Numbered from the stretch's first letter, positions 963 through 40,924 are shown. The stretch: 64,000 bases of DNA from Octopus bimaculoides (GCF_001194135.2 NC_068981.1:182408921-182472920); one strand, 5' to 3'. Numbers and translations are program-made. The notes: generated by a model from the sequence alone, not told the origin.

Positions 963-968
963 TATAAA
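963..968 (+). promoter_or_regulatory. TATA box of LU/Gly-rich gene
   Basis: TATAAA about 60 nt upstream of the ATG, with an initiator-like TCAT about 30 nt downstream. Confidence 0.6.
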
Positions 969-1023
969 TACTGAATGAATGGGTTTCTAGATTCATAAGA
1001 AGTAAGTCTGAAAAACGATCAAC

Positions 1024-1072
1024 ATGTACTGCCGAAGTGCAACGTTGGTCCTTGTCTTCATCTTCTGTGCAG
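1024..1072 (+). CDS. LU/Gly-rich protein exon 1 (signal peptide)
   Basis: AAC-ATG start, hydrophobic LVLVFIFCA, donor AG|GTAAAG at 1073, phase 1. Confidence 0.82.
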
Positions 1073-4000
1073 GTAAAGTATACTAATATATTTCATGTCT
1101 TCCTTTTTGTTTGCATTAATAATATTTTCTTTGTTAATTATAATTTCTTATTTTTAATTCGTTTATTTAAATATGTATAGCCACCGTTACTTTGTGTCTG
1201 ACGTAATGAAACGAGTCCATTTTATTGAGTGACTGGCGTAGAACTGGCTGAAATTAGAGGCCGTGTGAATTCTTTTATTATAATTTTAAGAGGAGAATTT
1301 GATCTCAACTCTTCGTGTTGTTGAAATATTCTTTAATAATATATACGTTGGTCAACTCGGTAGAGTGGCGGACAGAATGATTGGGAGTATTTAGTTTCAC
1401 TTCTTTAGGTTCAGATTTCGAATCCTACAAAAGCCAAAGTTGCACCTCATCCTTTCAGTGTCGATAGACTAAGTATCTGTGCAATACTGAGGTTGGAATA
1501 ATCGACAACACGCCTCTTTCTGGATGGAATCTTTGTACCTATATCAGAAATCAATTATATACTGTTACTGACATGATGAGGTTGTTCTTACTGTTGATTA
1601 CACAACGTTTCCACTGTCTGAAGTGGAAATGAAGTCAGCGAATTTAAGTATCTTGAAAATTGTATAAACATGAGAGGATCTCCTAGGAAAATTCTAAAGT
1701 CGAGGCCCACAATCTCTTCCACGACCCTTAGAATAGTATCATAAATGTTTCTTCTTATATTTGATAGTATTTACAGCCAGATAGACAAAGACTCACTGAC
1801 CAAGGAGTTAGATTCGTAAAATCAGTAGAGCTTTGTGATACGTAGTTACGTCTCTTTACGTTCTGCATTTAAATCTCTGACAATACCAATTAGTTTCATT
1901 GTCCTCACATCTCTGACAACACCAATTAATTCAATTGCCCTCGCATCCATTATGATATGCAAACAGTCGTAGATATCTTGATGTTTATCACCTTCAGTTA
2001 CTTTCTCTTCTCAATGATCGTCAGTACAGTTTCAAGTCATATCTACTGGAAACTTACACTTCTACATCACACTGCGCTCTCATATATCCCCATAGCTAAT
2101 TATTCGGCTATGTGAGTTATATCTATTATCCCTGGTATACCTCAGGGTTCTGTTATGTATTTCACGCTCTTCTTTCTATACATGAATGACTTCACTGTTA
2201 CTTCTAAGCTCACTCTTATACAAAGAATATTACACGTTAAGGCACCTTAATGGCTAAACTTTACAATAATGTCATCTAATGGCAACCTCAAAGATCAATC
2301 TTTTCCTTTTATTCTATTTTAGTTGATGCAATAATTACCCGTTAAGTACTGGGTATAGATTGGTTGTACCGTTTCTCAAACTTTGAGGCTTTGTGCTTCA
2401 TCAATCATCAGCCAAGTGCCCTTGCTACGACCAGGGGTCAGCTTGCCAAGACTCTCCATTTCCCTCTCTGCTGTGCTGCATGCATAAACTCATCCAGGCT
2501 CTTGTTTCCAGTCCATTCTTTGACGTCGTCGTCATCTACAAATATCTTTGACGACTTTATGTCTTATGTTCTCTTCTCTTGAATACTTCCTGTCAGGATG
2601 GTCTTGGGAAATAACTCGTGGCACATTCTACGTCCAAATATGATGGGTTTGTGGACTTGATTTTCGACACTAGGCACCTTCGAACTTCCATTTTTTCTAG
2701 TACGGCAGTGTTTGTTACTTTGATTTCCAACTTATTCTGCCCAAACTGCGAGACATCTACGTCTCAAAGACATCCATTGCTCTGTGCATTGTCCAAGGTC
2801 GACACCAAAAATGTAGATCGTTTATATAATGTGGACTCTACCGAAATGAACAAGATTGTGTTTATGCTTTTTCCTACACCGATGTTATCGCAATCCTGAC
2901 ATTTTCTGTCGTCTGCCTCAAATACTCGGCTTCTTTTATTTCACTGTGTCGTGCTGTTTTAATGCTGTTGCTATTACCAAAATTTTCCTCATCTTCCTCT
3001 ACGTCAATATTTCTCAGCCTTTTGTAACTCAGCCCTTCTTCTTTCACTAGTGTAGGGTGTGCGGTGTGTGCAGACCGCACAAAGGGGTCACTCTATACAT
3101 GCATTTACTGTAGTCGAAGGTATGTTACGTTTAAGGAAGAAAGGGAAGGTCGATTTGGCTTCTTCACAGAACGGCCCTAAAATCCCAGCCTTTCACTGAA
3201 ACGATGCTTTACCAGCTCCCCGTCCAAGATTTTTTTTTTTTAATTAAAAATTTATTTTAATCAAACTGCCTTGTAGTTTATTATTCGACGGGAGTCTGAG
3301 AGCCGTAGGCTAGGGATCCAGATGAGCATTTATCTATTTAACGCGGTAGTTTGGCAAAATCATTAGAACATCGGACAAAATGCTTCGTCGTATTAGTTAC
3401 AAATCTTACAAATCCTGCCGATGTCGTTCTTATAACTGTTTCCTACCCGCTGAAATCAATACCAGTGATTATTCGTTGACAAATACATCTGATAACAGAA
3501 AGATTAAACAAAGCAATAGTCTATTTACATGTACTAGTTTATAGGATAAATAGATAATAGTAATAATCTATTTTCTACTTATTTAATACAAATCAAGTAA
3601 TATTGATGAAGTATTTTCTCCGAAACGTTTGGCTACTTCTTCCTCGCGGCTCTACTATTTGAATTATTTGTATTACTTTTTGTCCGCTAGTTTCCTTGCT
3701 CTTCACTGTATTACTGTACAATACCATATAGACTAGTGATTGTCCACCTTTTGTACTTCAGCGCTACTTTCTTTCACCTCATTCTCCAAAAGAACGTTAC
3801 TGTCCAGGTTAAGAGAAAAACCTCACTGATATAAATTAACATAAAATTTCAATTTTTTAAATTTCAGCGCCAGCGGTATGGAGCGGTTATGGAAGTTCAG
3901 GACATAGCGGTGGCGGTGGTGGTGGCGGCAACGGTGGCGGCAACGGTGGTGGCAACGGTGGTGGCGGTGGTAGTTGGTCAGGAACTGGAGGAGGAAATAA

Positions 4001-4278
4001 TCTCAAGTGTTATGATTGCCACAGTGGTTCCGCAAGTTATACTTACCAAGACTGTCCGGTCAATGGAAATTTGAACGGCAACAAATTAGCAACTGTTAAC
4101 TGTGATGGTTTGTGTTTCTCAAGAACGAGCAAATGGGAGAAAGGTGGTAAGTACATTTGAATCGAATATTTTTGCATTATCTCCCCTGGGAAAATGTGCA
4201 TATACACACATTCACATGAACTCTCTCTCTCTCTCTCTCTCTCTCTCGATCTATCTATCTCTCCCCCCTCTCTCTCTC

Positions 4279-4330
<52 letters not shown>

Positions 4331-4425
4331 TCTCCTCTCTCCCTCTCTCACACGCACAAACACGCACACACAGACACAAACACACACACACGTGCACATA
4401 CACACTCTCTCTCATTTGGTGTCAC

Positions 4426-4468
<43 letters not shown>

Positions 4469-4730
4469 TTCTTTCTCACTCTTTGTCCCTCTCTTTAAAA
4501 TTCAGTCTTACAATCCCGGCGCTTAACTTTATCTAGAAGAGATTGTCTCCTCTACGATAGTTGACCACCAGGGGCATACCATATGTAAAAATCACGAGAC
4601 TTCTCCCGCAAAATTTAAAACTGTGTGCCTCTATTTATTTATATATTATCTATTTATTCATTTTTTTTTCTTCATCCTTGGTTATTAGACCTTCAGTTTT
4701 ACTGTGTTTTTCTGTATGGAAGTGATATAG

Positions 4731-4764
<34 letters not shown>

Positions 4765-7460
4765 AATGCATTCCACAATGGATTTTCACATAGTAACTTA
4801 AAGATTCACTCACAGTAGCCATTCTATAAACCTTCAAAGGATGGTTGTGTTTGCTTAGCTCCAAGTTAACCGTTATTTGGCGGACCTATGATCAAAAGCT
4901 TTCTTCTGCAATTAGCCTATTTTCTTTAGACCATAGCATCCAATATGTCTGTTTTTGCTTTTGTTTTTTTTTGTTTTTTTTTTACAGTAGGGTGTAATTT
5001 GAGTGAGATATGGTTTCCATTCCTAGCATGTCTAGCGCCCACATAGAAGCCTCCTTATTACTTGTCCATCCGAGCGGCTTTTATTCATTATTCAAAGTTT
5101 CTTCAAAAGCGTTTAATTCATACACCTCAAGTTATATCATGCTGACGATTTCTAAACAGAATGAAATAGTACAATACCTGCTTACTAATGACTAGAAAAT
5201 TTTAGAACTTTGTAATAAGTAAACAAACAAAGTATATATATCCTATGCATCTTTTTCATTGTTATTCCTTAATTTCAAGTTCAAAATCCTAATTTTGTCA
5301 AATATTAAGAAGAAATGATTATCTCCCTTATTCTATCTGTCCGCTCAAGAACTCCGCGTATTTAATCCAATATGTTCTGTTATTGAAACTCGAACGATTA
5401 TTATAAAGACAATTGTTGTTATTGTTCAATCCCAGGTCAGCGCTGATCGAGCAAAGCCACGATCAAAGTCATTCTAGCAATGACAATTCTATGCGTTTTC
5501 TTTTTGAGTCATAGTATATCTAGGATCACTCTTTTAACGCATCCTTTTGTTTTAAGTGGATACAGTGTATTTGAAAAGAAATTTGGCTACTATTTCTCGA
5601 ATGACGAGCGACCGCAAAAAGACTCGCTCATTAGCTCATTAAAAATTGACTGAGTTGACCTAAGATCCATAGGCATTTCATCCGTGACCATCTCGTTCTT
5701 TTAAGGTTACCTATGCCAAAATTAACCAATGCATCCTTTCAATCTTTAACGACAACAGGGTGTGATTTGAAGGAGACAACTGCTTATTTCTAGCAGAGTG
5801 ACTATTTAGAGGCTCTTCTTGGTCCTGTCCGTGTTACGATAATAGCATTTTTCATTGATCAGCTTGTAATCGAAATCCATAGATTTTTATTCCATTCCTT
5901 TTTTTTTTTTTTTTNNNNNNNNNNTTTTTATTCCATTCCTTTTTTTTTTTTTTGTTCTTTCCTTCTTTGTCTAAGTCAGTTATAATCCCCTTCATATCTG
6001 GTGTGCTATATGTAAATGCAATGATAAGAATACTTCTGATTTAGTTATCACTAGTAGCGATTTGATAGAGTTGGAAGATGGATGCAAGAACAAGTAGTTT
6101 GCGTGAATGTGTAAATACAAAAATGGTTATTTATCGTTAAACAAAACAATGTGACGTCGTTACGACCAATGACTCGATAGAAATGTTTGCAGCAGTTAAA
6201 CAGTTCAACTTTGTCTAGAGAATCACAGTAGTTGTGAGAATCGTTTGTATAAGGTTAAGACGTGTGCAACCACTGGCAGCTAGCGGACAGCTAATTTTAT
6301 TTATAGGTAATATTTCTGTCAAGGAAAAAAGGTGCTGAAAACAAAATTTTAATGACATTCTCCTTCTAGTAGAGATCCAAGTGATTAGTTCTTTGCTGAC
6401 GCCATCAATAATTGAGCGAATCATGATCATTGTGATACAGTGATTTCTACCGGAGATTTGATCGGACAGATGTTTGCTGATGTCATCAAGCTCTAACAAA
6501 GTCCTGGCCATTCAAATACAGCGATCTGGATTCAATTTGTTGGAAGTGAATTGGTGTTTAGGACTCTGCCAAATATTCCTACTACAGGAATATTAAATCG
6601 TTCCCCAGAATTTTACTGCTACTTTCTTTTAGCGTTCCGTTCAGAATAAATGAGCGACAAAGATGACATCAGTCGGTTTTGACCTCAGAACATAAAAAGC
6701 CGTAAATAAAAACCGCAGGTAATTTTTTCCCATGTTCTTACCATTCTGACAATCCACCGCCTGATATTTTTTTTATCTTTTCTCTCCAGTTTCTTTTATT
6801 TTATCATCCAGTTCATTCATTTTCTTTTCAGTTATCTACAGGGGATGTTCATCAGCTTTCCCCAATTTACCGAGTCACCTGAAACCTGGATGTATCGATT
6901 TTAACGGTGAATCATGGTGCATGTGTTCGAACGATCGTTGCAACACTGATGACATGGGCAGCTACATACATGGTGGTGGTGGCGGTGGTGGAAATGGTGG
7001 TGGTGGAAATGGCGGAGGCTCATGGGGCGGTGGTGGATCATGGGGAGGTAAAAATGGTAATGGTGGAGGAGGGAAAGGTGGAAATGATGGAGGTGGATCG
7101 TGGGGTGGTGGTGGTGGTGGATCGTGGGGCGGTAGTGATGGGTCGTGGAGCGGTGGTGGATCGTGGGGTGGTGGTGGATCGTGGGGTGGTAACGGAGGTG
7201 GTGACAGTGGGTCAAAGGGTGGCCATGGAGGCGGTGGATCTTGGGGTGGTAACGGAGGTGGTGATGNNNNNNNNNNTAGTAGTGGTGGAGGTAGCAGTGG
7301 TGGCGGTAGCAGTGGTGGAGGTAGCAGTGGTGGAGGTAGCAGTGGTGGAGGTAGCAGTGGTGGAGGTAGCGGTTCATGGGGTGGTGATGGCGGTGGAAGC
7401 AGTGGAGGCGGTGGAAGTAGTGGAGGAGGCGGAAGCATCGGTGGCAGTTACGGACGTTAA
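1024..7460 (+). CDS. Secreted Ly6/uPAR (LU, three-finger; quiver/sleepless-like) domain protein with Gly-rich N- and C-terminal arms; join(1024..1072,3868..4146,6832..7460), about 318 aa including a 10-N gap
   Basis: Exons join in phase 1-1 at GT/AG sites. Protein: MYCRSATLVLVFIFCAAPAVWS (signal-like) GYGSSGHSG7N(GGGN)2G5SWSGTGGGNN LKCYDCHSGSASYTYQDCPVNGNLNGNKLATVNCDGLCFSRTSKWEKGVIYRGCSSAFPNLPSHLKPGCIDFNGESWCMCSNDRCN (10 Cys, LKCY start, CxCxxDxCN end), then a GGSW/SSGGG tail ending GGSYGR*. TATA box upstream and AATAAA downstream. Confidence 0.88.
2040..2260 (+). mobile_element. Degenerate CR1/L2-like LINE reverse transcriptase fragment
   Basis: GIPQGSVMYFTLFFLYMNDF starting at 2134, resembling GVPQGSVLGPxLFxxYxNDL. 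Confidence 0.6.
2390..3050 (-). mobile_element. Degenerate RTE-clade LINE 3' fragment
   Basis: Minus-strand pieces RIAI.., GRISWKSKVTNTAVLEKM, PKTILTGSIQEKR, DDVKEWTG; frameshifts and stops. Confidence 0.65.
3868..4146 (+). CDS. LU/Gly-rich protein exon 2 (Gly-rich arm and N-terminal half of LU domain)
   Basis: Acceptor TTTCAG ending 3867, donor G|GTAAG at 4147; 279 nt open, 5 Cys. Confidence 0.9.
4203..4470. repeat. Compound (CT)n/(CTAT)n/(CA)n microsatellite in intron 2 of the LU gene
   Basis: Read directly. Confidence 0.95.
4855..5830 (+). repeat. Three degenerate copies of a ~200-bp interspersed repeat (about 4855-5055, 5430-5640, 5645-5830); another copy near 12070-12245
   Basis: Shared blocks GACCTATGATCAAA(G)GC..TTC..GC..TGACCA and AGGGTG(T)(G/A)ATTTGA...TATTTCTAGC. 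Confidence 0.55.
6832..7460 (+). CDS. LU/Gly-rich protein exon 3 (C-terminal half of LU domain and Gly/Ser/Trp tail)
   Basis: Acceptor TTTTCAG ending 6831; in frame with track ORF 6921..7460; TAA at 7458-7460; 10 Ns at 7267-7276. Confidence 0.9.
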
Positions 7461-7916: not shown

Positions 7917-8175
7917 TATCTATCTATCTATCTATCTATATATATNNNNNNNNNNNNNNNNNNNNNNNNNNNNNNNNNNNNNNNNNNNNNNNNNNNNNNN
8001 NNNNNNNNNNNNNNNNNNNNNNNNNNNNNNNNNNNNNNNNNNNNNNNNNNNNNNNNNNNNNNNNNNNNNNNNNNNNNNNNNNNNNNNNNNNNNNNNNNNN
8101 NNNNNNNNNNNNNNNNNNNNNNNNNNNNNNNNNNNNNNNNNNNNNNNNNNNNNNNNNNNNNNNNNNNNNNNNNNG

Positions 8176-8330
8176 GTTGGCGGAGGTTGGCGAGAGAGAT
8201 TTTGGAGGTTAGCGAGAGAGTTTGACAAGAGAGGTTGTCGAGAATGATTGTCGGAGGTTGGCGAGAGAGGTTGTCGGAGATTGGCGACAGAAGTTGTCGG
8301 AGGTTGGCAAGAGAGGTTGTCGGAGGGAGA
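8176..8330. repeat. G-rich ~23-bp minisatellite (GTTGTCGGAGGTTGGCGAGAGAG)n next to a gap
   Basis: About 6-7 imperfect units visible after the N run. Confidence 0.8.
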
Positions 8331-9074: not shown

Positions 9075-10150
9075 TATTAAAAATGGGGAAGGGTGGTTTA
9101 TGGGATTGCCTTAGGTTTCCCGTCCATAGAAGGTATAACTTTATGGGGTATTGTCAGATCTCAATAACCTATTGGTCCATGACCTCTTAAAAATATTGAG
9201 GGGAAAATGCCTCACTACTCAAAGGTAACAGTTGGGATTATCTTCCTTTGCTACTGGCTATCGACTTCCGGTTGTGCCCTCGTCATGTAGGCTCCAAAAA
9301 GCTAGCAGGAACCTCCTAAAATGTAAACATGGCCTGAAAATCTCCGTTCTGGAGTTAAGGATGTTCCCTGGTTCGAGTGAGTCTTTTAGGATTCTCGCAC
9401 GTTCAGCTATGCTTAATTTTCAACGCTTTGTCTCGTTGATGTAGGGGCCTGGGTTCTCGAGGATTTTCCATGAGATCGAGTATGGAATCCCATCGTCTCT
9501 TAGTTGCCAGACGTGACTGGCCAGTGACGTTACGTATCTCCTTTCGGAACTCTGAAGGAGGACCTGTAGTTGGAGAGACGTTGCTGGAAAGAGTTCCCGG
9601 AACATCCAATGTATCACTGTGGGCGTGTGTTGTTGGTGCTGTACCTGCTGATACTGTTGTTGTTGTTGCTGCTGCTGATGCCATTGTTGTTGCTGGAGCT
9701 GAGACTGCTGGTGTTGGCGTCGCTGGAAGTGGTGGTGGGGCGTCGGTAATGGTATCGCCACTGCCGGTTATGGTTGAAGGCGCTGTTGTTATTGTGATCT
9801 TCGTCATTAGTGGGAGAGTTACCATTGCTGCTAGAGGTGTCATTAGCTGTGGTTCTATTGATGCCTCTGTTAGGGCCATTGTCGCTGCAGCTGCTGTTGT
9901 CATTGCTGCCATTATTTCTGGCAGTGGCACTGGACCTGTTGCTGCTGCTATAGGCGTTGTCAGGTCTGCTGCTGTGGACGTTAGGGAAGCTGTTGATAAT
10001 GCTGGTGCTGATGGCGATGCTGCTGTTGTTGTTACTGCTGTCTTTGCCATTGGGGGAACTGCCAATGCTGTCACTGGTGCTGTTATTGCTATTGTAGCCA
10101 ATGTTGTTAACTGCAGCAATGGTGGCGGTATCGCTGGTTCTGTTCTCATG
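9075..10150 (-). mobile_element. Penelope-like element fragment: low-complexity segment, C-terminal GIY-YIG region and terminal repeat remnant
   Basis: RRYVTSLASHVWQLRDDGIPYSISWKILENPGPYINETKR*KLSIAERARI...LNSRTEIFRPCLHFRRFLL (9259-9560), with a stop at the expected Cys; hammerhead-like remnant at 9097-9167. Confidence 0.75.
9097..9167 (-). ncRNA. Degenerate type I hammerhead ribozyme-like motif
   Basis: Minus strand: TTATTGAGAT-CTGACAA-(hairpin)-GAAAC-CTAAGG-CA-ATCCCATAA; core bases mutated. Confidence 0.45.
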
Positions 10151-11240
10151 TCTATTATCTCTCTCTCTCTGTATATATATATATATATATACATAAGTTA
10201 ATCTAGTGTCTTCCTACTTCTAATTCAGTTGAGAAGGAGAAAGTCATTCTCAGACTGGGGAGCAGACCTGAATATTTGCAACCAAATGGAACTCCACTAA
10301 AGACATCCAAGAACCAAGTCGTAGCATAAAACCAAGCAACAGATGAAGTTTACCACTAATAATATGGGTGGCCCTTCCAACAAACTTCCACATAGTTTCT
10401 GTTTATGAAATCTTGCTTGTAGTACTTTGGTTAACCCGAGATTATGAAAGAAAACATGACTAAAAAAACTGTACAACGGGATCGAGCCCAACACTGCATA
10501 TTTGTAAAGCAAACATATTAACCACACAGCCATGCCTCTCTTTTATTAGCGGTACCTAACATACAGAGATAAATTTTAAATTAGCTAATTTTCATCATGA
10601 TAAATTTAATAGCTTCAAATTTTGGCACAAGGCTACCAATTTCTGGGGAGGGGGTAAGTCAATTACATTGACCCCAGTACACAACAGGTACTTATTTTAT
10701 CAACTCTGAAAGGATGAAAGGCAAAGTTGGCCTAAGTGGAATTTGAGCTCAGAATGTAAAGACGGATGAATTTCTGTGCTAACGATATTGCCAACTTGCC
10801 ACCTTATTGTGATAAATTTATTACCAACAAAAATTGAAAGTTCGATCGAAATAGAAACATTTATTCATTTTCAAGTTGAAGGTTATCAAATTACATTCTT
10901 ATATTAACAAATATATACCAAACGATGATGATGATGATGATGATATATATATGTATATGTATATGCATGTTTTTTCTGTGTATATATGTGTAGATTTTAT
11001 ATTTGTATTTTTATATATATGTATATATGTATGTATATGTGTATCTATATAATATGTATATTTGAGAGCATGGGAGGGTGAGTGTGTATTTATATATACT
11101 ATTCTTTATTTATTATATGTGTGTATGAGTGTATTTGTTTTTTATATGTATGTTTAGGTAGGTACATGTGTGTATGTGTAGATATATATTTATGTATATA
11201 TGTATATATATGTATATATATATTTATGTATATATATATA

Positions 11241-11410
11241 CTACACTCTCTGAGTGGTTGGCGTTAGGAAGGGCATCCAGCTGTAGAAACTCTGCCAAAT
11301 TTAGATTGGAGCCTGGTGTTGCCATCCGGTTTCACCAGTCCTCAGTCAAATCGTCCAACCCATGCTAGCATGGAAAGCGGACGTTAAACGATGATGATGA
11401 TGATGATGAT
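11241..11410 (+). mobile_element. RTE-type 3' tail copy
   Basis: Near-identical to 1-180; ends in (GAT)n. Confidence 0.8.
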
Positions 11411-13339: not shown

Positions 13340-16300
13340 CTGCAACAATAATAAACAAAAAGGTAAAAAAAATTAGTAAATAGGCACCCAGCACCCACTA
13401 CACTCTTTGGAGTAGTTGGCCTTATGAAGAGCATCCAGCTATAGAAACCATGCCAAATCAGATTGGAACCTGGTGCAGCTCCCCAGCTTACCAGTTTCAA
13501 CCAAACTGTCCAACCCATACCAGGATGGAAAGCAGATGTTAAATGATGATGATGTTGATGATGACAGCACCTCTGGACACAGTGGTACAAAATCATTCAC
13601 CTGGTACAGGTTATAAAGTGGTTGATAACAGGAAGAGCATGACATACACAACAACAATTCTGCCAGATGATGAAGAAGCACCACAAATGGCAATACTCGG
13701 TAATGTTTTGAACAAAATTTGTTTCTAAAACCTGCAGACAGACAAAACTTCATCCTTTTTATTTGGTGTAAGTGCTGCATCAAGATATTATACTTCTCAG
13801 CCAAACATAAATGCAACTTTTTGATCCAGGTTCAACAAAGCTCTAGCTCAGTGTTTCCCAAACTTTTCGGGCTGCTGCCCCCTTGACACTCAGGCCGCAT
13901 TCCTAGCACCCCTACTCCAACTAACCATCACAAGCATAGACCTTTTTCTGAAGTAAATTCAAAGCAACTGTACTTCACAAATAAAAACTTAAGCTAATGA
14001 ACCCGTTCTTTTGTTTTTACACGAATCGCTTTTTACATGAATCGCTACCCCATTATCACCCCCACCCCACCGGAGGGCATTAATGCCCACTTTGGGAACC
14101 ACTGCTCTAACTTATAAGCATGTCGTTCCACTGTCCTTCAGTTTCCAGACACATTAAAATAGGAAGATGATGAAGATGATGATGATCATCATCATCGTTT
14201 AACATCTGCTTTCCATGCTAGCATGGGTTGGACGATTTGACTGAGATGGTTGCACCAGGCTCCAATCTGATTTGGCAGAGTTTCTACAGCTGGATGCCCT
14301 TCCTAATGCCAACCACTCTGAGAGTGTAGTGGGTGCTTTTACATGCTATCGGTACGAAGGCCAGTCAGGCGGTACTGGCAACGGCCACACTCAAAATGGT
14401 GTATTGGTGTGATGGAAATCTAAAAGAGTATGTTTAGATTTCACTGCATTATTGACACTATTTGCAAGATGTTGTCTTTCCTCTGTACACAAGCACACCA
14501 TTGTGTGAATAGGATATGATATTGTTGCAAATACACTCTGGAGGTTAGAATTAGGGAAGGGATCTATTTCTATGACTTTGGTTATGAAGAATATTTGAGA
14601 TGTGATGCTTTCCAAGTAAACATGGCTTCACAAGTACAGGACTACAGCAGGATGTTTAGGATATTACAGAGAAATGTAAACAAAACAGCAGTTTTGCTTG
14701 AGTGGTGTCCTGCCATATATACATATATGACAGGCTTCCATACAGTTTTTGTCTATCAATTTCATTCACAAGGTATTAGCCAACCTAAGGCTATAAAAGA
14801 CACTTGCCCAGATGTTATGGATCAAGGAGTAGAGTAGAACCCCTGAGACCATGTAGTTAGAAACTTAACTCTGCACCTATACCTTTCAATTTCTCAAAAG
14901 ACATTCGACTTGGACCAGGTGGGAAAATATTACAAAAAGAAACCCTAAGAAAATGAGCCAAGGTAATATCTACATGGTTGCTCAACCAGATATCAAATAT
15001 CCCTTAAATAACATACCACCACCTTAGAACAAGGACATATTGGACAATGTAGTCCTAGACAAACAAAGTAAAAAGATGACATGGTCATGGCTGGACTCAT
15101 TTTAACATAAGTTAGCTTGATCAGGGATAAGTCCAAGTTAAACAACAGTAAAAATTTTTTGGGGAAAAAAAACAGCTGCAAAAACTTAAGACCCTTACTT
15201 TTCTGGAGTAATTCCAAAGTTTCAACCCGTTCATTATCAGGTAATACTTTGTGTCCTGGTGGAACTGTTGGGTCTGGTATATTGGCAATCCTCTCTTCCT
15301 CATCTTTTACCCACTGTGCCTGTCGTTCTTTTAAACTGAAATAGCAAATAAAACATAGAAATAAGTCAGACAATGTACAATAAAAGCATTTAAAATGTGA
15401 ACAAATATTGAGAATAACAAAAAATTCATTACTTAAATTTAGAAAATTTTAAGACAAATATCTTATAGCTGATGTTTTGTCCTCAGCTCAGCCTCATGTT
15501 CAAACATATTCCAGACATGACATTCATGTCTTTCATGCAGTTTCAGTACACCTAAAACCACATTATTCAGTAGTTAGAATGCTATACAACTGCCTCAAAG
15601 CTCACAATTGCACTGAATTGGTTTGACATTAGGTATATAGTGGTGTAACTTAATATAACAATATAGCTGTTTTATGAAACAAGTCTCAACTTATGATTAT
15701 TTTAAAATTCAAGTGTAATTTATTATTTTGCTACTTCAAATTATTAGTGCCTTCTGCACTAGTGTGGGTGCCACATAAAAAGTACCAGTTCTGATGCTGT
15801 GTAAAAGCACCCAATCCACTCTGTAAAAATTGGTTGGCATTAGGAAAGGCATCCAGCTGTAGAAACCATGCCAAAACAGACACTTGGAGCCTGGTGCAGC
15901 CCTCTGGCTTACCAGCTCCAGTCAAACTGTCCAACTTATGCCAGCAAAGATGGATGTTAAATGATGATGATGACCACATCGTGGTTGCCTGGTTATTCTT
16001 TCATTCTTTTATTAGTTTCAGTCTTTGGACTGCAGCCATGCTGGAGCACTGCCTTCAAGGGTTTTAGCTGAACATAGTAACCCCAGTGCTTTGTCAGGTA
16101 CTGAGTTTATTGATTTCATAATGGACAAAGTTTACTTCAGCATGAATAGACATGGCTTTTGAATAGGAACAGACTTGATCCAGTGTAATATGCAAAGGTC
16201 TGAATTTGTATAACCTTGAAACACATTCTAATTTTGGAAATAACTGAAAAACAGAGGGTAAAAGTTGATGAAATTACCATCATCATCATCATCATCATTT

Positions 16301-19300
16301 AACGTCCGTTTTCCATGCTAGCATGGGTTGGACGATTTGACTGGGGACTGGCGAACCAGATGGCTACACCAGACACCAATCTGATCTGGCAGAGTTTCTA
16401 CAGCTGGATGCCCTTCCTAATGCCAACCACTCCGAGAGTGTAGTGGGTGCTTTTTACGTGCCAGTCCGGCAGTACTGGCAACGGCCACGCTCAAATGGTG
16501 GTTTTACGTGCCACCTGCATAGGAGTCAGTCCAATGTTTTGTTCACATGCCACCGGCACGAGTGCCAGTAAGGCGAAGCTGGAAATGATCGCGCTCAAAT
16601 GGCGCATTTTACGTGCCACAGGCACGGAAGCGAGACCGCTGCTCTGGCAGTGATCCCGCTCGGATGGTGCTGTTAGCACTCCACTGGCACGGGTGCCAGA
16701 CATTGAATTTGGTACAGTTTCGATCTCACTTGCTCCTAATGTCCCTGCACTGAGCTCCAATGTCTACTTTGGTATAGTTTCCACAGGTGGTGATTTGCTG
16801 TGCTTGAGAAGACATGTAAAGCAAAGTGAAATTGTGGTTGTGGCCAATGCTGGTGACACATAAAAGGGCATCTGTATGAGTGACACATAAAAGGGCACCC
16901 ATGCTGGTGACATGTAAAAGACATCCAGTACACTTTGTAAGGAACACTGTGTTAGGAAGGGCATCCAGCCATACGAACCAATCCAAAACATGACTGGAGC
17001 CTGGAGCAGCTCTCTGAGTTACCAGCTCCAGTTAAACCACCTAACCTGTACCTGCATGGAAAATAGACATTAAATGATGATGATGATGATGATGGATTCT
17101 CTTCTTTGTGTCAACCACTTTACAGAGGGTATTAGGTGCTGTTTCCATGGCACCAGCACTTGAGAGATCACCAAGTACTCGCAAGACAAGATCCCTTAAC
17201 TGAGTGGGGTATAGTATTGAGGGATATGAAAGTATGATAGAAGGATGGGAGCAAGTGTCTTGTTGAAGAGGTGAATAAATGGCTTCTCCAGAGAGAGAGA
17301 GAGAGAGAGAGATGTGAGGTCAAGGTACAAGGTGAATATGAGAGAGAGAGAGAGAAATAAAAGAGAAAAGTATAGTACTTACTATTTAGGGATAACACCT
17401 TTTTTGTATTTGTTAAAATCTTCTTCTGTTTTCTTTTTAGCATCAAGTTCCCGCAGAGAACTTGGAGGTCGTACCTGTTGGTGATGTTTTGCTGCCCGAC
17501 TATTCCGCTTGACAAAATCTACATCTTTTCTAAGTAGTTCTGTCTATTTGATGACAAAAAAAATAACTTTTTGAAAACAATCTTCACAAAATAGAAAAAT
17601 CAATTTCACATTTTCCTGTTTTACTTAGGCAACTCACTGTAGTTGTATTGTTTTCTTAATTAAGAAATTACATCTCCAGAGATTCTCTACACAAGCATTT
17701 CCCATCAAGAGTTCCTGAGAATATTGTGTTCCACCAAAGATCACAAGGAGTTCTCTGAGAAGTTGCTAAAAGTTCTGTGAGAAATAATAATTTATAGACT
17801 AATTATATTCATTTTTTAATATATTTTGTGTATTGGAGAAGTATAAACAATTTATTGAACATAAATTTTAATAATGAAACCTTATGAGGACTCCTAAGCG
17901 TCAAATGGACCCTGGGTTTAATACTTGGACACAAGCTTCCTTGACTTACTGGCTAAGCAGACCCACAATAATGATCTGAGTTCAGCACTACAAGCAAACA
18001 AAATAAATTATATAGTGCTCCAGCTTCTTCTAGTAATTAACAATACACACACACAATAATCAATAGCTATTAACAGTGAACTGAATTGAGCCAATGAAAG
18101 TTTAGTGCTTTGATTATGTGTGGGACACAGAGCAACAATGGCAAATGGGATGTGAACTGTTAACCAGTCATCTAGGATTTATCAACTTAACAGGCTTTCC
18201 ACTCTCTCAATATAAAGCCATACTATCACAATTTCATTGATTACCCTAATTGTGAGTTCACATTACCTCTCTGGTAAGAAATAACAGATATTTGAGAATT
18301 TAATACATGATTTTGTTTTTGATGTTTTTTCTCATTTTTTTTTTTTTTTTGCATAGCCTAAAAGCTTCAGAATTTCAAACCTCTCATAAATTAGTGAAAA
18401 AACAGGAAATTACTAAAGCTGGGCTATAGACCAGATTAGTTAATAAAATGTTGATGTCTTCCTTGTTTATGAAGAGGAGCTGTTATGATGTATGTATGTA
18501 GCTTCACTGCAAGACAAAAAGAAAAAAAAACTACCTTTCATATGTGTTAGGACCACTATAATTCCACTTGGGACAACCTGTAGTGAACAGAAATGTGAGG
18601 ATAAGGGATCCTTTAATTTTGTCAATCTTCTTTAGTGCTAATGCCATCATAAATGCACCCAGTACACTTTGCTTAGTGTGTGTGGTGGTTGTCGAGTGTG
18701 TTGTGTGTGAGGGGGAAATGGAGAGGCCCTTTTAGTCTTGCTGAAATCACGACAATCTCTCTCAAGTGCTGGGGCCACAATATAATGCTTCCAGTATATG
18801 CTGTAAAGTGGTTGGTGATAGAAAGGGCGTCTAGTTGTAGAAACCAAGTCACTGCCACCCTTACCCCAAAGAAATGAAACTTAGGAGTGAAATGTGATTC
18901 TCTGACTTTTCTATGTGAGCTCTAACAACCTGTTCAATCTGTGCCAGCATGGAAAGCAAATCATCATCATCATCATCATCGTTTAACGTCCGCTTTCCAT
19001 GCTAGCATGGGTTGGACGATTTGACTGAAGACTGGCAAGCCAGAAGGTCGCACCAGGCTCCAATCTGATCTGGCAGAGTTTCTACAGCTGGATGCCCTTC
19101 CAAACGCCAACCACTCCGAGAGTGTAGAATGTACAATCATAAGATATTGATCATGAGTATCCTTCATGGGAGGAGAAATAATAGCATATCAACTTTGATT
19201 TAGGTTATATATTTTCATCATCATCGTTTAATACCTGCCTTCTATACTGGCATGAGCTGGCCAGGCAGGAGCCTGCACCAGACTTCTGTATTTGTTTTGG

Positions 19301-20611: not shown

Positions 20612-23600
20612 GAGGAGGTGGATAATATTTATTCTTCATACCTGTAATTGTCCTCTAAACCTTGATGGAACATCATGAAATTTTTTTGACTTCCATAACT
20701 CTTTGGGTGCTTCATGACTTTCAAGTGTTTTTGATCTCACTAACTTTTGAATCTGATGAACTTTCTTCAGGTTTTCATTCATATAATTTTTAGGTTTTGA
20801 CTCTGGAAATAGAAATTCAAATTGAAATATTGACTATTTTTGATGGGATGAGGTGTAGGTGAAGAGGAATAGTGTTAATTGATAATCTGTGCAGAAATTA
20901 CAAGGTATCTTTTATCCTCTTTTCTTTCAATCACAGGACTGTGGCCATGCTGGGACACCACTTTGAATCAACCCCAGGGAGAGATGGAGCCAGAGCAAAA
21001 CAGGTTTGTTGCTGTAGAGGAGCTACATGGATACTGGAAGATAGAGTGGGAGTATCTTTGGCTGAACTGCTCAGTTATGGGGACAAAAACAAACCAACAC
21101 CAGTTGTTAAGCAATGTGGGGGGGACAAACACAAACACACATACATATAATCGAAATCGAACCAAATTCAACGACTGGCACTCATGCCAACCTTCCTTCA
21201 TTGGACACTAACTTCTGCTTGCGAAGACCTGTTGGGGCAAGTGAAATCGTAACTGAACCAAATTCGATGACTAGTACCCATGCCAGTGGAGCGCTAACAG
21301 CACCATCCGAGCGGGATCACTGTCAGAGCAGCTGTCTGGCTTCCGTGCTGGTGGAACGTAAAAGGCACGATTTGAGTGTGATCGTTACCAGCGTTGCACT
21401 TGTGCCGGTGGCATGTGAACAGAACATTCGAGCGAGGTCGTTGCCAGCACTACTGGACTGACTCCTGTGCAGGTGGCACATAAAAAACACCATTTGAGTG
21501 TGGCCGTTGCCAGTACCACCTGACTGGCCCTTGTGCCGGTGGCATGTAAAAGCACCTACTACACTCTCGGAGTGGTTGGCATTAGGAAGGGCATCCAGCT
21601 GTAGAAACTCTGCCAAATCAGATTGGAGCCTGGTGCAGCCATCTGGTTTGCCAGTCCTCAGTCAAATCGTCCAACCCATGCTAGCATGGAAAGCGGACGT
21701 TAAATGATGATGATAATGATGATGATATAGTCCAATCCATGCCAGCTATGGAAAATAGACATTAGATGATGATGGTGATATATAAATGTAGTATAGTTTC
21801 TGTGAAATATTGTCTCATATAAATATCTTTGATTATAGTTTTTTATACAGAGCACAGATAACTAAATAAACACAAAGGACTAACACTTAGGTTCAGAATT
21901 TAAGACATGTCTGGCATGTCTTAAGTTGGAGCTTGATTTAATAATTTTTAAAGCATGCAAGTTGTAACCATATTGCCTTTATTTCAGGAGACTGCTACTC
22001 TAAAATTAAAGATTTTAAACTAACTCTTATCGTTTGAAAGATGGTAGGAGATGAATATGAAGTGGGGCTTATTGAAAGAAATTTTTCTGCTACATTATAC
22101 ACTAACACATAACATTCAAAAGAGCAGTCCATTTAGCTTTAAAATTCAGTGGTTATAATTACAGTGAGCTGTGATTGATGGATGCTTTATTAGCTTTCAG
22201 TCATCATCGTTATTTAACATTCACGTTTCATGCTTGACCATGCTGGCATAGGCTGAAAGTTTGACAAGATCTGATAGGTCCAATGACTGCTTTATACTCC
22301 AGTTTCTATGACTGGAGGCCAACCCTAACAACAACGACTTCACAATATAGACTGGGTGCCTTTCTCATGCCACTAGTACTAGTGAGATCACCATGCAATG
22401 CACAAGACTATGAAACCTGAGGTGGAGAGGGTGGGGGGAGTCAGCTTTATGTTAGGAGATAAAGGGTTAAAGTATGAAAGAGATAGGGAGGCAAAATAGG
22501 TCCTTGTTATAGAGAAGCTACATAATTATTCACATTTAAAAGAGAGTGAGAATGATGAATAGGAACTTCATTATCATTATCATCATCATTTAATGTCCAT
22601 TTTCCATGCTGGCATGGGTTGGACAGCCTGACAGGAACTGGCATGGCCTGGGGCCACATCACATTCCATAGGCCATTTTGGCTGGGCTTCTACAGCTGGA
22701 TGCCCTTCCTAACGCCACTCACTTTACAGAGTGTACTGGTTGCTCTCTATGTGACACCAGTGCCCACACCAATGCATTTTACGTGGCACGAGATAAACAG
22801 TGGTGAGTGCAAATCTTACCAGAGACCCAAATATATGGAAACCTGAAATTACTCAAACATATTATTTATGAAACAATGTAAAGGCAGTTATCAGTACTGA
22901 ATCTCAATGTATTATAAGACAATACTATTATAACTTGAAAATGAAGACATAAAATGTGCATAAATCTATGTCAATGACGACAAAATATTCATGGACACAG
23001 AAGTTAAACCTATTTCAATATCACAAAGATCTATATGGTCGGTGCTTATCTTTAACTTCTAAATCATTAGCAGGTATAAGATAAATCTCTTTGACTACAA
23101 CATTAATCAGACAGAGATAGATTTTCCTGAGGAAGAAATTAAACTCAGCACTGCAAGCCATTTCATTAATTTTACAGTACAGTCATTCTCTACTATTTTG
23201 TACTATGCAACTAAGCTACTATGAAATAAGTAAATGGAGCCATTGAGAACTAAGACAATGCAGAGCTGCTGATATAATATGAAAGCCAAATCTAGTTGAT
23301 TGATGTCATATGTGACTCATCCATCCATGATCTATGAACAGAGAAGACTATAAATATATTAAATCTCATTCAAAAGACTCTATTGTATTTTCTCATTCAT
23401 AACCGATATTAATTATCTACAGCATTAATATATTTGGAATAGACAATTTGGAGACATAAATGAGATACTGTATCAGTTAATTATAAGATAATTCCTTTCA
23501 AAGAAGCAAAATTAGGAATGCTGAGCAAGATGATAATTTGTGTTTAACCCTTTAGCATTCAGATTACTTTACCAAATGTAATGCCTATTTATTCACATTG

Positions 23601-26600
23601 CTTAAAATTAATCATGTATTATCTTGTAGCTTTGACATTTCAATGATGTGATTGTTTAGTTTTAAAATGACATTGCAGGATAGGTGTGAAAGACCAGATC
23701 TGCCCAATTTGAACATAAAGTATGCAGAATATATGGGCCTGATGTGGCTGGTTTAAATGCTAAAGAGTTAACAATGATAAAGAGTTGTTTGCAACAGAGT
23801 TTTATGTGATATGATTGAATAGCAGAATGTTTCTCTTTCCATTTTGTAATTACTTCATCTCACAGTGCAGTTTTGTTGTTGTTGGCACTCCGTCACTTAC
23901 GACAACGAGGGTTCCAGTTGATCCGATCAACGGAACAGCCTGCTCGTGAAATTAACGTGCAAGTGGCTGAGCACTCCACAGACATGTGTACCTTTAATGT
24001 AGTTCTCGGGGATATTCAGCGTGACACAGTGTGGCAAGATTGACCCTTTGAATTACAGGCACAACAGAAACAGGAAGTAAGAGTGAGAGAAAGTTGTGGT
24101 GAAAGAGTACAGCAGAGTTCGCCACCATCCCCTGCCGGAGCCTCGTGGAGCTGTAGGTGTTTTCGCTCAATAAACACTCACAACGCCCGGTCTGGGAATC
24201 GAAACCACGATCCTATGACCGCGAGTCTGCTGCCCTAACCACTGGGCCATTGTGACTACATGCGCAGTTACATACAGGATAAATACATAATGCACAAAAA
24301 TGCTAAATAAAAGTTGAACAAATCTTTCTATTAGACACTTCAATTCCTGATTTTATATATTTGGCCTGGCCAATAAAGTCATACCCAAGACTAGGGACTT
24401 TAAACTGCCTGGTCCTTATGGGAATAACTTTCAGCTGAATCCAGTACTTGGGCTCTGGTTCAGGAGTTTCAGTATTTGGAGGAACATGGAATCACCTGCT
24501 TAGATGAACAGACAACAAACTGTCAACAACCAGGGTTAACCGTTCCAGTTATGAAACTATTGCTATCATCTTCATGATGTGTGCAGATGAAATATTTCAA
24601 GAACCCAGGCCAGACATTCCTGCCTCATTGCCAGGTCAGGACAGCTGGTATGGATGAGTTGCATTGGTGTGAGCAAGTTATCTGACCAGATAATGATGAT
24701 GAGTAAAGTCATAGCATGACATTAGAATGGTCACAGGCAAACTGCACATTAAAGAAAAATTACCTTGAATTTTTTTTAGTAGTGCAGCTCACCTGATGAC
24801 AAGTCATGTACCAAGCAACCTGCTTCTCAAAAAAGGTAGCCAATGCATTAGAGTATGCCTGTAACCCTAACCCTAGTTTATTGAGGATTTTGCTAAACTA
24901 GTCAGCTTGTAAGACCTGTATCACCAAATTTTCGGTTCCAGAGATAGTTCTGAAAAATGTTATTGATTTTGGGGACATATTTTTAAAGGTAAAATAACTT
25001 TCATAATACTAAAATACTGAAATCATAAAGTTGTGTCTATCTTTTTTAATGTTTGCTAGAAAGGAAAACATTTTGATTAGAAGTGACACACCTAATTACT
25101 GCTACTTCTTCATTAAATGACCGTTTTCCATGCTGGCATGGGTTGGACAGTTCAACAGGAGTTAGCAAGCAAGAGGACTGCACCACACTTTAATATCTGC
25201 TTTAGTAAAGTCTCTACAGTTGGTGTCCTTTGAGATAATGATGATGTTTATTAGGTGTTCACTTCTCTATGTAAGAGCATATGACAAGCGTATACTGGAC
25301 CTGAATGGAGTCTGTAGAGATACAAAAGAAGTACACTTCTTGATCTTATGCTCTAATTAGCTTTGATTGTCATCCAAAATAGATGTCACAGTGATTGTAT
25401 GTTTTCAGACACATAACAGATGCAAACTATTGCAGAGAGAAGTAACCCAGAACAAATAAAATAACAAGGAAGAAATTATGTTACCTTTTTTCTCAAATTT
25501 TGTGAACCCAATACCATTTTCATTTACATGAAGCATAATGTATGCAAAACTGTACCAGTTCTCGTTTGATGCTTGTATCTTTCTAGAACAGAAACAGTGA
25601 TAAAGATAATTAAGCCAACTCTTTCATAATTAACTCGTTATTGATTTTTTATTAATTAGCCAACATACTGTTAGGAGAATAGGAATGTCTAGAATAATGA
25701 ATGGTCAGTGGCTTCAGTAAACAAAGCCCGAGGTGATGAGTAGAGGTAAGAGAGATGATGAGTAGAGGTAAGAGAGGTGATGAGTAGAGGTAAAAGATAG
25801 TGAGTAGAGGTGAGAGAGGTGATGAGTAGAGGCATTGATTGCAATCAGACGATGGTCACCTAGATAGTGGAAGCTATCAACTACTTCTAGTTTTTCTCCC
25901 TGGAATGTGGCAGGAGTTGTTCTCTGCACATTTTCAGTGTTTATTGCTCCTGAGCATCTGCCACATACAAAAAATTTTTTGCTAGTTAGCCGTCCTTTGA
26001 TATTGATGCACCTCTTATGTGTCCATAGCTTACACTAGGTACATCTTATGGAGTTTCTACCTATGCCTTTTCTACAGATTGAGCAGGGCCATCTACCTGA
26101 AGGGGTTTGTGCTTTGTCTACCTTCCTACTTATTAGGACTTTGGTTTTAGCTAGGTTGACTCAAAGGCCCTTCGATTCTAGTCCTTGCTTCCACACCTGA
26201 AAATTCTCCTCTAGTTCTGATAGCGACTCAGTAATTAGAGCAAGGTCATCAACATAGAGGAGCTCACACACAGTAATCACTCAGCATGTCGCGGTTCACC
26301 TATTGCACACTCAGTACATTGTGAATTTTTCTGGTTAACTTATGTAAATTTATATTGTGGACTCCTCAGTATATCAGGGTTTCTGTGGCTGATAGGTATT
26401 TATATTTTTTTTAGATTCTAATTATTTCTGTGGGAAGTTTTGGAACGTAACATCAGTGATAGTCAAGGGATTACTGTATATGTGTGTGGATTTATTAGAT
26501 AATAAAACGTATGGTGTGTACCTGGTAGCTTACTGGTAAACCATGTTCACTTTCACAGTGTTTGTTGTGTATTTGGTTAGTGAGGGAAAATGGAAGATAC

Positions 26601-32336: not shown

Positions 32337-32810
32337 GAAGTGGCTGTGTGGTAAGTAGCTTGCTTACCAACCACATGGTTCTGGGTTCAGTCCCACTGCG
32401 TGACACCTTGGGCAAGTGTCTTCTACTATAGCCTCGGGCCGACCAAATCCTTGTGAGTGGANNNNNNNNNNACCTTGGGCAAGTGTCTTCTACTATAGCC
32501 TCGGGCCGACCAAATCCTTGTGAGTGGATTTGATAGACAGAAACTGAAAGAAGCCTGTCGTATATATGTGTATATATATATATGTATGTGTGTGTGTATA
32601 TTTGCATGTCTGTGTTTGCACCCGCCCCCACATCGCTTGACAACCGATGCTGGTGTGTTTCGATCCCCGTAACTTAGCGGTTCAGCAAAAGAGACCGATA
32701 GAATAAGTACTAGGCTTACAAAGAATAAGTCCTGGGGTCGATTTGCTCGACTAAAGGCAGTGCTCCAGCATGTCCACAATCAAATTACTGAAACGAGTAA
32801 AAGAGTAAAG
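32337..32810 (+). mobile_element. tRNA-headed SINE copy (contains a 10-N gap with duplicated flanks)
   Basis: Same family as 29949-30351. Confidence 0.85.
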
Positions 32811-34030: not shown

Positions 34031-34294
34031 GCTAGAAGAGTTGTGTCCCACCCACATGTAACAGCAAACTTTTCACATAAGCTACTCCAAGAAACCAAAC
34101 TACATTTCCTCTTCTAAACTGCATCTTTCTCTTCCTCACATTTCCTCTTCATAAACTATGATTGTCTTCCAATCCTCTTTCCCACCCCCAGTGCCCTGAT
34201 CACTGTATTGCTGCATTCCACATCTCCCACCCCCATTTTTCTACCTAGGTTTTCACCAGTCACTGCAATCCCTAATTCTTACTTGTGCCTTCTT

Positions 34295-40890: not shown

Positions 40891-40924
<34 letters not shown>

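Follow-up and report, generated by a model that had tools for sequence, protein, structure and literature searches.

Domains of the three-finger (LU) type are usually discussed as lipid-anchored modulators, compact secreted ligands, toxins or receptor ectodomains. A gene of the octopus Octopus bimaculoides raises the question of whether such a domain can also stand outside the cell between two long glycine-rich arms and, if it can, from what kind of ancestor the protein arose and what it may do. The gene lies in a stretch of 64,000 nucleotides (GCF_001194135.2 NC_068981.1:182408921-182472920), referred to here as the window, and was pointed out in an earlier reading made by a model from the DNA alone (the sequence-only reading). 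The computational analysis described below indicates that the product is, with high probability, a secreted and unanchored LU domain of the QVR (quiver) type placed between two predicted disordered arms.

Gene structure and conservation in Argonauta

Three exons on the plus strand, separated by GT-AG introns, join into a coding sequence of 957 nt including 10 N, as confirmed by retranslation of the exon joins (Table 1). Exon 1 ends at a phase 1 donor (ATG..G/GTAAAG, the slash marking the junction), exon 2 (3868-4146) is bounded by the acceptor ..TTTCAG/CG.. and a second phase 1 donor, ..GGTG/GTAAGT, and exon 3 (6832-7460) follows the acceptor ..TTTTCAG/TT... The sequence-only reading had described a three-exon gene with both introns in phase 1, encoding a signal peptide, a complete LU domain and two glycine-rich arms, and its exon boundaries and translation were reproduced in full.

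The closest protein to the LU domain is a partial model of 144 amino acids (aa) from Argonauta hians (73% identity, E 5.6e-46), encoded at a gap-free locus (BAAFZT010000006.1, L001 in our numbering). The public 'partial' model at L001 10001-11167 stops 11 residues into a tail of 224 aa. Its annotated ATG is formed by the last bases of intron 1, and the true acceptor, ..AAATGGCAG/CA, gives the identical phase 1 start, APSVW..; the full exon 3 runs to position 11794 and ends in GGGSYGR followed by a stop codon. The complete Argonauta product carries an N-terminal arm of 38 aa rich in Gly, Ser and His, which begins with an octopus-like APxVW(S/C)GYGxSGH, an LU domain split by the intron at the identical point (..SKWEKG/VIYRGC..), and an uninterrupted Gly/Ser/Trp tail of 224 aa.

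Comparison of 94 LU codons between octopus and Argonauta gave a proportion of nonsynonymous differences (pN) of 0.131 and a proportion of synonymous differences (pS) of 0.778, hence a pN/pS of 0.17, with 18, 10 and 45 differences at codon positions 1, 2 and 3; proportions were used because the synonymous sites are saturated and a Jukes-Cantor dS is not computable. A low pN/pS at saturated pS points to a coding gene that has been under purifying selection throughout a long divergence. The 3' ends are conserved as well. In both species the last six residues and the stop codon are followed by the block TAATAAA(A/C)TTTCAAACTGA, identical at 18 of 19 nt and situated 113 nt (octopus) and 137 nt (Argonauta) past the stop. 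The conserved GGSYGR end together with this poly(A) block identifies exon 3 as the terminal exon, and the conserved stop context argues against a downstream exon for a glycosylphosphatidylinositol (GPI) anchor. It is thus strongly supported that the locus is an intact protein-coding octopod gene under purifying selection. No second copy, paralog or cluster was detected in the window by tblastn with the LU domain, the signal peptide or the full protein. The Argonauta gene is neighboured by a DEPDC5-like gene, and a tblastx comparison of its flanks with the window for synteny gave transposon matches only.

Assembly gaps and the reading frame

The window contains five gaps of 10 N, three of which have exact-duplicate flanks of 29-57 nt, at 5915-5924 (29 nt), 32462-32471 (57 nt) and 48483-48492 (36 nt). 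Such flanks indicate overlap joins, which add a short artificial duplication but leave out no sequence. The gap at 5915-5924 sits in intron 2, with no coding sequence at stake; exons 1 and 2 are on one contig (779-5914) and exon 3 is on the next, joined through the 29-nt overlap. The gap inside the tail is of another kind. Its flanks do not overlap, like those of the gap at 30140, and its surroundings are tandem repeat, which indicates that repeat units are truly missing there.

The in-frame appearance of the tail gap is an accident of the placeholder, in which a single surplus base stands on either side of the 10 N. Among the three frames that follow the gap, one is full of stops and two are open; the frame reading SSGGG..GGSYGR and stop was chosen since it alone matches the gap-free Argonauta tail and has the same last six residues. 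A Pro-rich open reading frame (ORF) on the minus strand (6962-7438) and the second open plus-strand frame of the tail were considered and rejected as by-products of the GGN repeat. At the other end of the gene, an exact 27-nt duplicate (643-669 and 1140-1166) was observed, in which part of intron 1 recurs at the contig end before a 109-N gap (670-778). The duplicate resembles a contig-end overlap of k-mer size and makes it uncertain where the first 669 bases belong with respect to the gene.

The folded LU domain

The LU domain spans 95 aa and ends in CN, with Cys at residues 64, 67, 79, 95, 99, 115, 130, 139, 141 and 146 followed by N147. All ten Cys and the Asn are invariant across 51 relatives, in agreement with the usual definition of the domain (8-10 Cys, a CxxC start and a CN end). 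QVR (PF17064) is the only Pfam family matched by the protein: the isolated domain scores 29.6 bits (E 1.5e-6) over model positions 1-86 of 86, narrowly above the gathering threshold of 27.3 bits, and the score is 29.1 bits with short flanks and 25.9, just under the threshold, in a 254-aa context. A match to QVR at E <= 0.01 is also given by 41 of the 51 relatives. The E-value over the whole QVR model, taken with that of the ortholog, shows that the architecture is not a product of chance.

An AlphaFold2 (AF2) model of the domain, built on the alignment of the 51 relatives, has six strands, with a predicted local distance difference test (pLDDT) value of 90.0 and a predicted template modelling score (pTM) of 0.82. 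When it was compared with the PDB using Foldseek, the top 33 matches were all three-finger folds (probability up to 1.00), including short-chain snake toxins, uPAR, C4.4A, TGF-beta/activin receptor ectodomains, Lynx1 and GPIHBP1, with weak E-values (best 5.6e-3) and template modelling (TM) scores of 0.63-0.67 when normalised to the toxin. By sequence, the sole PDB match is a cytotoxin at E 0.25, and a PDB profile search returned no match.

In the canonical LU gene, a signal exon is followed by two half-domain exons, with phase 1 introns and the second intron at the tip of loop 2 (PMC6600238). The octopus gene likewise has three exons and phase 1 introns, and intron 2 splits the domain at G109/V110, at the loop 2 tip, between the model strands 45-49 and 57-61. 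The sequence-only reading had recognised this layout of signal and two half-domains and had named profile searches with HMMER and an AlphaFold-type model as checks; the layout agrees with the published one, the QVR match lies above threshold and the model adopts the three-finger fold. That the folded part is a single predicted three-finger LU domain of the quiver type is therefore strongly supported.

Secretion and the absence of an anchor

The product begins with MYCRSATLVLVFIFCAA.., which forms a hydrophobic core with a maximum 12-residue Kyte-Doolittle mean of 2.77; the hydrophobic leader reads MYCRSATLVLVFIFCAAPAVWS, and possible -3/-1 cleavage sites are found after residues 17-22. Entry of the product into the secretory pathway through this predicted signal peptide is strongly supported. 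At the other terminus, hydropathy over 12-residue stretches of the last 30 aa reaches no more than -0.09 (octopus) and -0.54 (Argonauta), as against 1.9-2.9 in 17 GPI-like relatives, and by hydropathy the small omega residue, short spacer and hydrophobic stretch of about 15-20 aa that make up a GPI signal are not present. The absence of a hydrophobic C-terminus, noted in the sequence-only reading, thus holds for the proteins of both species. A C-terminus of this kind, with the conserved stop and poly(A) block behind it, makes a GPI signal very unlikely, and it is strongly supported that the product has neither a GPI signal nor a membrane-spanning segment. The protein contains no N-x-S/T site, and its sequence has no dibasic cleavage site between the LU domain and the arms.

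The glycine-rich arms

The N-terminal arm of the octopus protein is 45 aa long and consists of 53% Gly, 13% Ser and 11% Asn. The tail consists of 59% Gly, 20% Ser and 5% Trp and comprises about 163 read residues in addition to those lost in the gap. The sequence-only reading had put the tail at 'at least 170 aa'; a long tail is confirmed and the figure is slightly generous. The range across both species is 57-59% Gly, 20-29% Ser and 5-6% Trp, and bulky residues other than Trp are nearly absent from the tails. The isoelectric point (pI) is 6.2 in octopus, with near-neutral charge, and 8.8 in the mildly basic Argonauta protein.

Nearly every Trp of the tails stands in the motif GSWGG (22 of 23 sites: 8 of 9 in octopus, where the ninth reads GSWSG, and 14 of 14 in Argonauta). 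Over the two tails the Trp residues are spaced at 6-22 residues, one interval across the gap excepted; in Argonauta the spacing is 11-22 residues. The Ser that precedes the Trp is encoded by TCN codons that vary synonymously between the species, other Ser residues use AGY, and Gly is encoded by GGT, GGA and GGC. This synonymous variation and the mixed Gly codons indicate that it is the protein sequence GSWGG that is preserved, and that the motif does not merely result from a pure microsatellite.

The underlying DNA repeats are species-specific, namely a 15-nt SSGGG unit in octopus (6.3 copies, 96% identity, 7277-7370) and units of 36 nt and 210 nt in Argonauta. As judged from these sequences, the tails turn over by tandem duplication while their composition, motif and both ends are preserved, the ends common to the two octopods being APxVW(S/C)GYGxSGH.. 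at the start and ..GGSYGR at the finish of the product. The arms share their exons with the LU halves, and this arrangement, together with the species-specific tandem repeats, points to an origin through growth of repeats within the exons.

For the mature protein up to the gap, AF2 gives pLDDT values of 93-96 in the LU core, 43-59 in the N-terminal arm and 36-51 in the tail, with no secondary structure in the arms, and both arms are accordingly predicted to be disordered. The tail also has the character of glycine-loop and aromatic sticker-and-spacer sequences, in that a single aromatic residue recurs in a disordered stretch rich in Gly and Ser. A homology search with the tail alone yielded 8000 candidates with shared words, none of them at E 1e-3.

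Relatives and evolutionary history

An exhaustive HMMER search identified 67 related proteins at E <= 1e-3. Their traced sources are the gastropods Patella, Haliotis, Gigantopelta, Littorina, Pomacea, Candidula, Batillaria, Lymnaea and Physella, the chiton Liolophura, the annelid Owenia and Octopus itself, the last with a different, GPI-like gene; all are uncharacterised or carry the automatic name 'protein quiver'. A profile search through a word-indexed database added little (three proteins only).

The C-terminus was scored in 65 of the relatives. Forty end within 20 aa past the LU domain and are non-hydrophobic, 17 are GPI-like and 8 carry long tails that are not hydrophobic; a hydrophobic C-terminus is lacking in all seven of the closest single-domain relatives. 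Glycine arms were found in none of the 65 and are so far seen in the two octopods only. Many of the unanchored relatives carry Thr-rich, mucin-like stretches, and sub-threshold matches resembling CPG4 (chondroitin proteoglycan 4) occur in 6 of the 10 unanchored relatives scanned, several of which are Thr-rich. In P0013, P0017, P0018, P0023, P0034 and P0062 a Cys-containing domain with repeated sub-threshold CPG4 matches precedes the LU domain, and these sequences hint at an undescribed architecture in mollusc relatives, consisting of a mucin-like region, a CPG4-like domain and an LU domain. A compact relative was also observed in the Logan assembly of SRR26493808 (L002, 820-974), whose last exon starts at the same phase 1 point (..cag/TGATCCACCGTGGATGC) and ends in CNTDDMSGYV and a stop; this compact unanchored form is a candidate for the ancestral state.

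It is strongly supported that the octopod gene belongs to a mollusc/annelid subgroup of unanchored C-terminal LU domains that end in CNTxDM..Y. The sequence-only reading had proposed that a GPI signal was replaced by a tail resembling structural proteins. This history finds no support: the seven best relatives are unanchored, 40 of 65 stop within 20 aa past the LU domain and one ends in CNTDDMSGYV. Since the closest relatives are unanchored and mostly end soon after CNTxDM, the replacement of a GPI signal is not parsimonious, and extension of an already unanchored LU domain by tandem-repeat growth looks like the simpler history.

Comparison with known systems

The mollusc and annelid relatives, among them those from Haliotis rubra (XP_046543381.1), Gigantopelta aegis (XP_041370842.1, XP_041368499.1) and Liolophura sinensis (XP_064616775.1), have LU domains 41-45% identical to that of the octopus and share with the octopod protein the 10-Cys pattern, the CNTxDM..Y ending, the lack of a hydrophobic C-terminus and a low-complexity partner sequence. 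Their low-complexity parts are Thr/Ser/Pro-rich and mucin-like, or acidic, and usually N-terminal only, with the LU domain usually last; unlike the octopod protein, they have neither glycine arms nor GSWGG repeats.

The tail resembles glycine-loop domains (loricrin, keratin ends), FUS-like domains and the His-rich domains of squid beak, all of which have aromatic quasi-repeats in a Gly/Ser background. Glycine-loop and aromatic sticker/Gly-Ser spacer domains mediate weak multivalent self-association, elasticity or coacervation. The octopus tail differs from them in that Trp, and not Tyr, Phe or His, is the sole sticker, and in that it is extracellular, fused to an LU domain and without Gln/Lys-rich transglutaminase ends.

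Among described proteins, the nearest architecture is that of SP-10/ACRV1 of the human acrosomal matrix, a secreted and unanchored single LU domain with a long disordered segment (PMC6600238); in SP-10, however, that repetitive segment is N-terminal only, is encoded by an extra exon and is not reported to be rich in Gly and Trp, whereas in the octopus the two LU exons themselves encode the arms, the longer of which is C-terminal. GPIHBP1 illustrates an LU function that depends on a flanking disordered region, which gives a more than 250-fold higher ligand encounter rate (PMC6600238), but GPIHBP1 is GPI-anchored, occurs in mammals only and binds lipoprotein lipase, and a separate exon encodes its short, highly acidic disordered region at the N-terminus. 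The octopus gene has no extra exon for an N-terminal disordered segment of the GPIHBP1/SP-10 type. The QVR proteins quiver/sleepless, Lynx1, SLURP-1/-2 and the snake toxins share with it the fold, the 10-Cys pattern, the CxxC start, the CN end and the three-exon phase 1 layout; QVR proteins and Lynx1 are GPI-anchored, whereas the octopus protein lacks an anchor signal, and SLURPs and toxins stop directly behind the domain, where the octopus protein continues with a tail of at least 163 aa. The protein thus shares a signal peptide and the lack of an anchor with the compact secreted single-LU proteins (SLURP, PATE, toxins), and departs from them in continuing beyond the last disulfide.

Type II crustins and hyastatin also combine a signal peptide, a glycine-rich region and a disulfide-rich domain, which in the chitin-binding hyastatin has 6 Cys (PMC12466427). 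The crustin (WAP) and hyastatin (6-Cys) domains are not LU domains and are not found in the octopus protein, for which Pfam gives QVR only, and their glycine regions are much shorter and on one side only; the likeness is one of analogy and not of homology.

No description of an LU domain with Gly/Ser/Trp arms was found in protein databases or papers, and the protein is undescribed in the literature searched on cephalopod and mollusc Ly6 and glycine-rich proteins, where a preprint on the Argonauta eggcase proteome mentions glycine-rich shell proteins only in general terms. The statement of the sequence-only reading that no family with this architecture has been described is borne out in this respect; it is overstated in another, as unanchored LU domains with low-complexity regions are known from the mucin-like mollusc relatives, SP-10 and GPIHBP1 (PMC6600238). 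Such combinations are common among the relatives and the octopod gene is less exceptional for it. What is new is the Gly/Ser/Trp chemistry and the two-sided placement only.

Proposed function and alternative explanations

A function may be proposed from these features. The LU domain would act as a specific ligand-binding head, while the tail would behave as a glycine-loop or sticker-and-spacer polymer in which Trp residues are the stickers and Gly/Ser runs the flexible spacers. Such a tail could associate with itself or adhere to extracellular matrix or polysaccharide (mucus, cuticle, chitin or egg coat), and the LU heads would in this way be held in the extracellular space and presented there multivalently, with no need of a lipid anchor. 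Sugars, chitin among them, can serve as stacking partners for Trp. The conserved termini might allow end-specific processing or cross-linking, since Gly-Arg classically signals amidation and a Tyr among Gly residues can form dityrosine. By analogy with known systems, a self-assembling or multivalent function, also suggested in the sequence-only reading, is plausible; assembly or retention through an LU head and a sticker-and-spacer tail is a tentative mechanism, whose chances we place somewhat short of even, and anatomy and mechanism taken together are about evenly poised between being right and wrong. The more specific proposal that a Trp-sticker tail builds or anchors a secreted material of octopods (sucker or skin cuticle, egg-stalk cement or mucus), decorated with three-finger heads, would be unlikely in that exact form.

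Several points weigh against this reading. The GGN-rich tail is open in a second plus-strand frame, so that the length of the ORF proves nothing alone, and the DNA evidence leaves room for splicing inside exon 3. A similarity search and a scan for a signal peptide with donor within 10 kb upstream of the Argonauta gene did not find its signal-peptide exon; a 14-nt match considered as Argonauta exon 1 lies inside a retroelement and was rejected. The signal peptide of the octopus protein was called by hydropathy alone, low pLDDT is a proxy for disorder only, and the CPG4-like matches of the relatives are all below the Pfam threshold. Self-association, matrix binding, amidation and cross-linking are suggested by the composition of the sequence. 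The searchable collections hold no transcript or protein of the octopus gene, and the Octopus proteomes in them lack it.

The alternative that survives best, although itself unlikely, is that the protein is a soluble neuromodulator of the Lynx/SLURP/quiver type, acting on nicotinic receptors or potassium channels, with the arms serving as passive linkers, cleaved pro-regions or diffusion brakes. QVR (quiver/sleepless) as the sole Pfam match, the presence of Lynx1 and three-finger neurotoxins among the structural matches and the existence of secreted single-LU modulators such as SLURP-1 and SLURP-2 (PMC6600238) would all be accommodated by it. The nearest relatives, however, are unanchored LU domains behind mucin-like or sub-threshold CPG4 regions and not of the GPI-anchored QVR type; GSWGG, the even spacing of Trp and both termini have been kept despite saturated synonymous sites, which is unexpected for passive linkers; and the lack of dibasic sites between the LU domain and the arms speaks against cleaved pro-regions.

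A role as a humoral immune effector, in the form of a glycine-rich antimicrobial or microbe- or chitin-binding protein similar to crustins or hyastatin and possibly amidated at its C-terminus, is rather improbable. The order of signal peptide, glycine-rich region and Cys-rich part is that of the crustacean effectors (hyastatin, PMC12466427), the conserved ..YGR end before the stop fits an amidation signal, and the Trp residues among Gly could attach to sugars or membranes. Yet Pfam detects no WAP or other known antimicrobial domain, the octopus protein carries almost no net charge and that of Argonauta is no more than mildly basic, and the gene is a single copy with no cluster in the 64 kb. 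The glycine regions of crustins and hyastatin are also far shorter than a tail of 160-220 aa, which counts against this explanation.

That the tail is absent from the mature message, the GGN minisatellite being removed as an intron, or that the locus is a dead or unexpressed relic or an assembly artefact, is very unlikely. The tail is tandem-repeat DNA, contains an assembly gap and is open in two frames, and no Octopus protein set in the database contains the gene. These points are outweighed by the pN/pS of the LU domain at saturated synonymous sites, by a tail that directly continues the LU half in frame within the same exon in two species, by the conservation of GSWGG and of GGSYGR with its stop despite complete turnover of the repeat units, by the use of several Gly codons, which a pure microsatellite would not show, and by the position of exons 1 and 2 on one contig to which exon 3 is joined by the 29-nt overlap. 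Anchoring by GPI through an alternative downstream exon with a hydrophobic signal can hardly be credited: 17 of 65 relatives are GPI-like and downstream gaps, such as that at 7946-8174, could conceal an exon, but two species share the stop context and the poly(A) block, the latter 113 and 137 nt past the stop, the closest relatives are unanchored and the GPI signal of LU genes normally lies in the exon of the second half-domain (PMC6600238).

Other features of the window

The coordinates of the gene and its transcript ends are collected in Table 1. Intron 2 carries microsatellites, with long (CT)n and (CA)n tracts and (TGA)12 at 4221-4468 and 4731-4768. Downstream of the gene, a 23-nt minisatellite, TTGTCGGAGGTTGGCGAGAGAGA, is present in 6.4 copies at 8177-8326, directly 3' of the 229-N gap 7946-8174. 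About 800 bases at 9403-10201 are open in several frames on both strands (Ala/Val/Thr-rich, and on the minus strand Gln-rich with stops) and include a weak 27-nt repeat at 9630-9701; the region was considered as a further exon and rejected, since no Pfam family matches it and its appearance is that of a degenerate trinucleotide repeat.

Table 1. Features of the octopus gene in the window (positions counted from the first base of the window).
Feature	Position	Strand	Details
Candidate TATA box	963..970	+	TATAAATA; 61 nt 5' of ATG; pattern search, basis is position alone
Exon 1, coding part	1024..1072	+	MYCRSATLVLVFIFCA and base 1 of codon 17; most of the signal peptide
Intron 1	1073..3867	+	2795 nt, GT..AG
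Exon 2, first part	3868..4001	+	End of signal peptide and N-terminal Gly/Ser/Asn arm (APAVWSGYGSSGHSGGGGGGGNGGGNGGGNGGGGGSWSGTGGGNN)
Exon 2, second part	4002..4146	+	LU first half, Cys 1-5: LKCYDC..DCP..NCDGLCFSRTSKWEKG
Intron 2	4147..6831	+	2685 nt as assembled; contains 10-N gap 5915-5924
Exon 3, first part	6832..6971	+	LU second half, Cys 6-10: VIYRGC..GCIDF..WCMCSNDRCNTDDMGSYIH
Exon 3, second part	6972..7457	+	Gly/Ser/Trp tail: nine GSW(G/S)G, six SSGGG units, end GGSYGR
Assembly gap inside tail	7267..7276		Flanks without overlap; frame across gap inferred from Argonauta ortholog
Stop codon TAA	7458..7460	+	After ..GGSYGR; identical terminal hexapeptide and stop in Argonauta
Poly(A) signal AATAAA	7573..7578	+	113 nt 3' of stop, inside conserved block TAATAAAATTTCAAACTGA

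The remainder of the window is transposon-rich. A short interspersed element (SINE) type of sequence occurs in many copies (18-77, 11237-11339, 13393-13458, 14152-14314, 16384-16437, 19068-19121, 21565-21618 and 52043-52096); several copies are also found in the Argonauta locus by tblastx, and the element is probably a SINE-like repeat shared across octopods. Fragments of retrotransposon reverse transcriptase, with weak Pfam matches to RVT_1 and zf-RVT, lie at 25936-26274, 33310-34007, 34293-35003 and 40264-40950 and show up to 57-65% translated identity to a retroelement in the Argonauta locus.

Implications

The absence of the gene from the Octopus protein sets searched and the state of its only annotated copy, the truncated 144-aa Argonauta model with a false ATG as its start, indicate that low-complexity genes of this kind are lost by annotation. 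Beyond the anchored, compact, toxin and receptor forms, the gene shows a further route in the evolution of LU proteins, in which an already unanchored domain gained long disordered glycine arms, apparently via growth of repeats within its exons, and the arms were retained in two octopod lineages despite saturation at the synonymous sites between them. Should the material proposed for the Trp-sticker tail prove real, the protein would be the first LU protein to serve as a structural or biomaterial component and the first extracellular sticker-and-spacer polymer to use Trp only. If the tail drives assembly or retention, it would provide a natural example of a disordered polymer acting in place of a membrane anchor, and the protein may be a new biomaterial protein of cephalopods.

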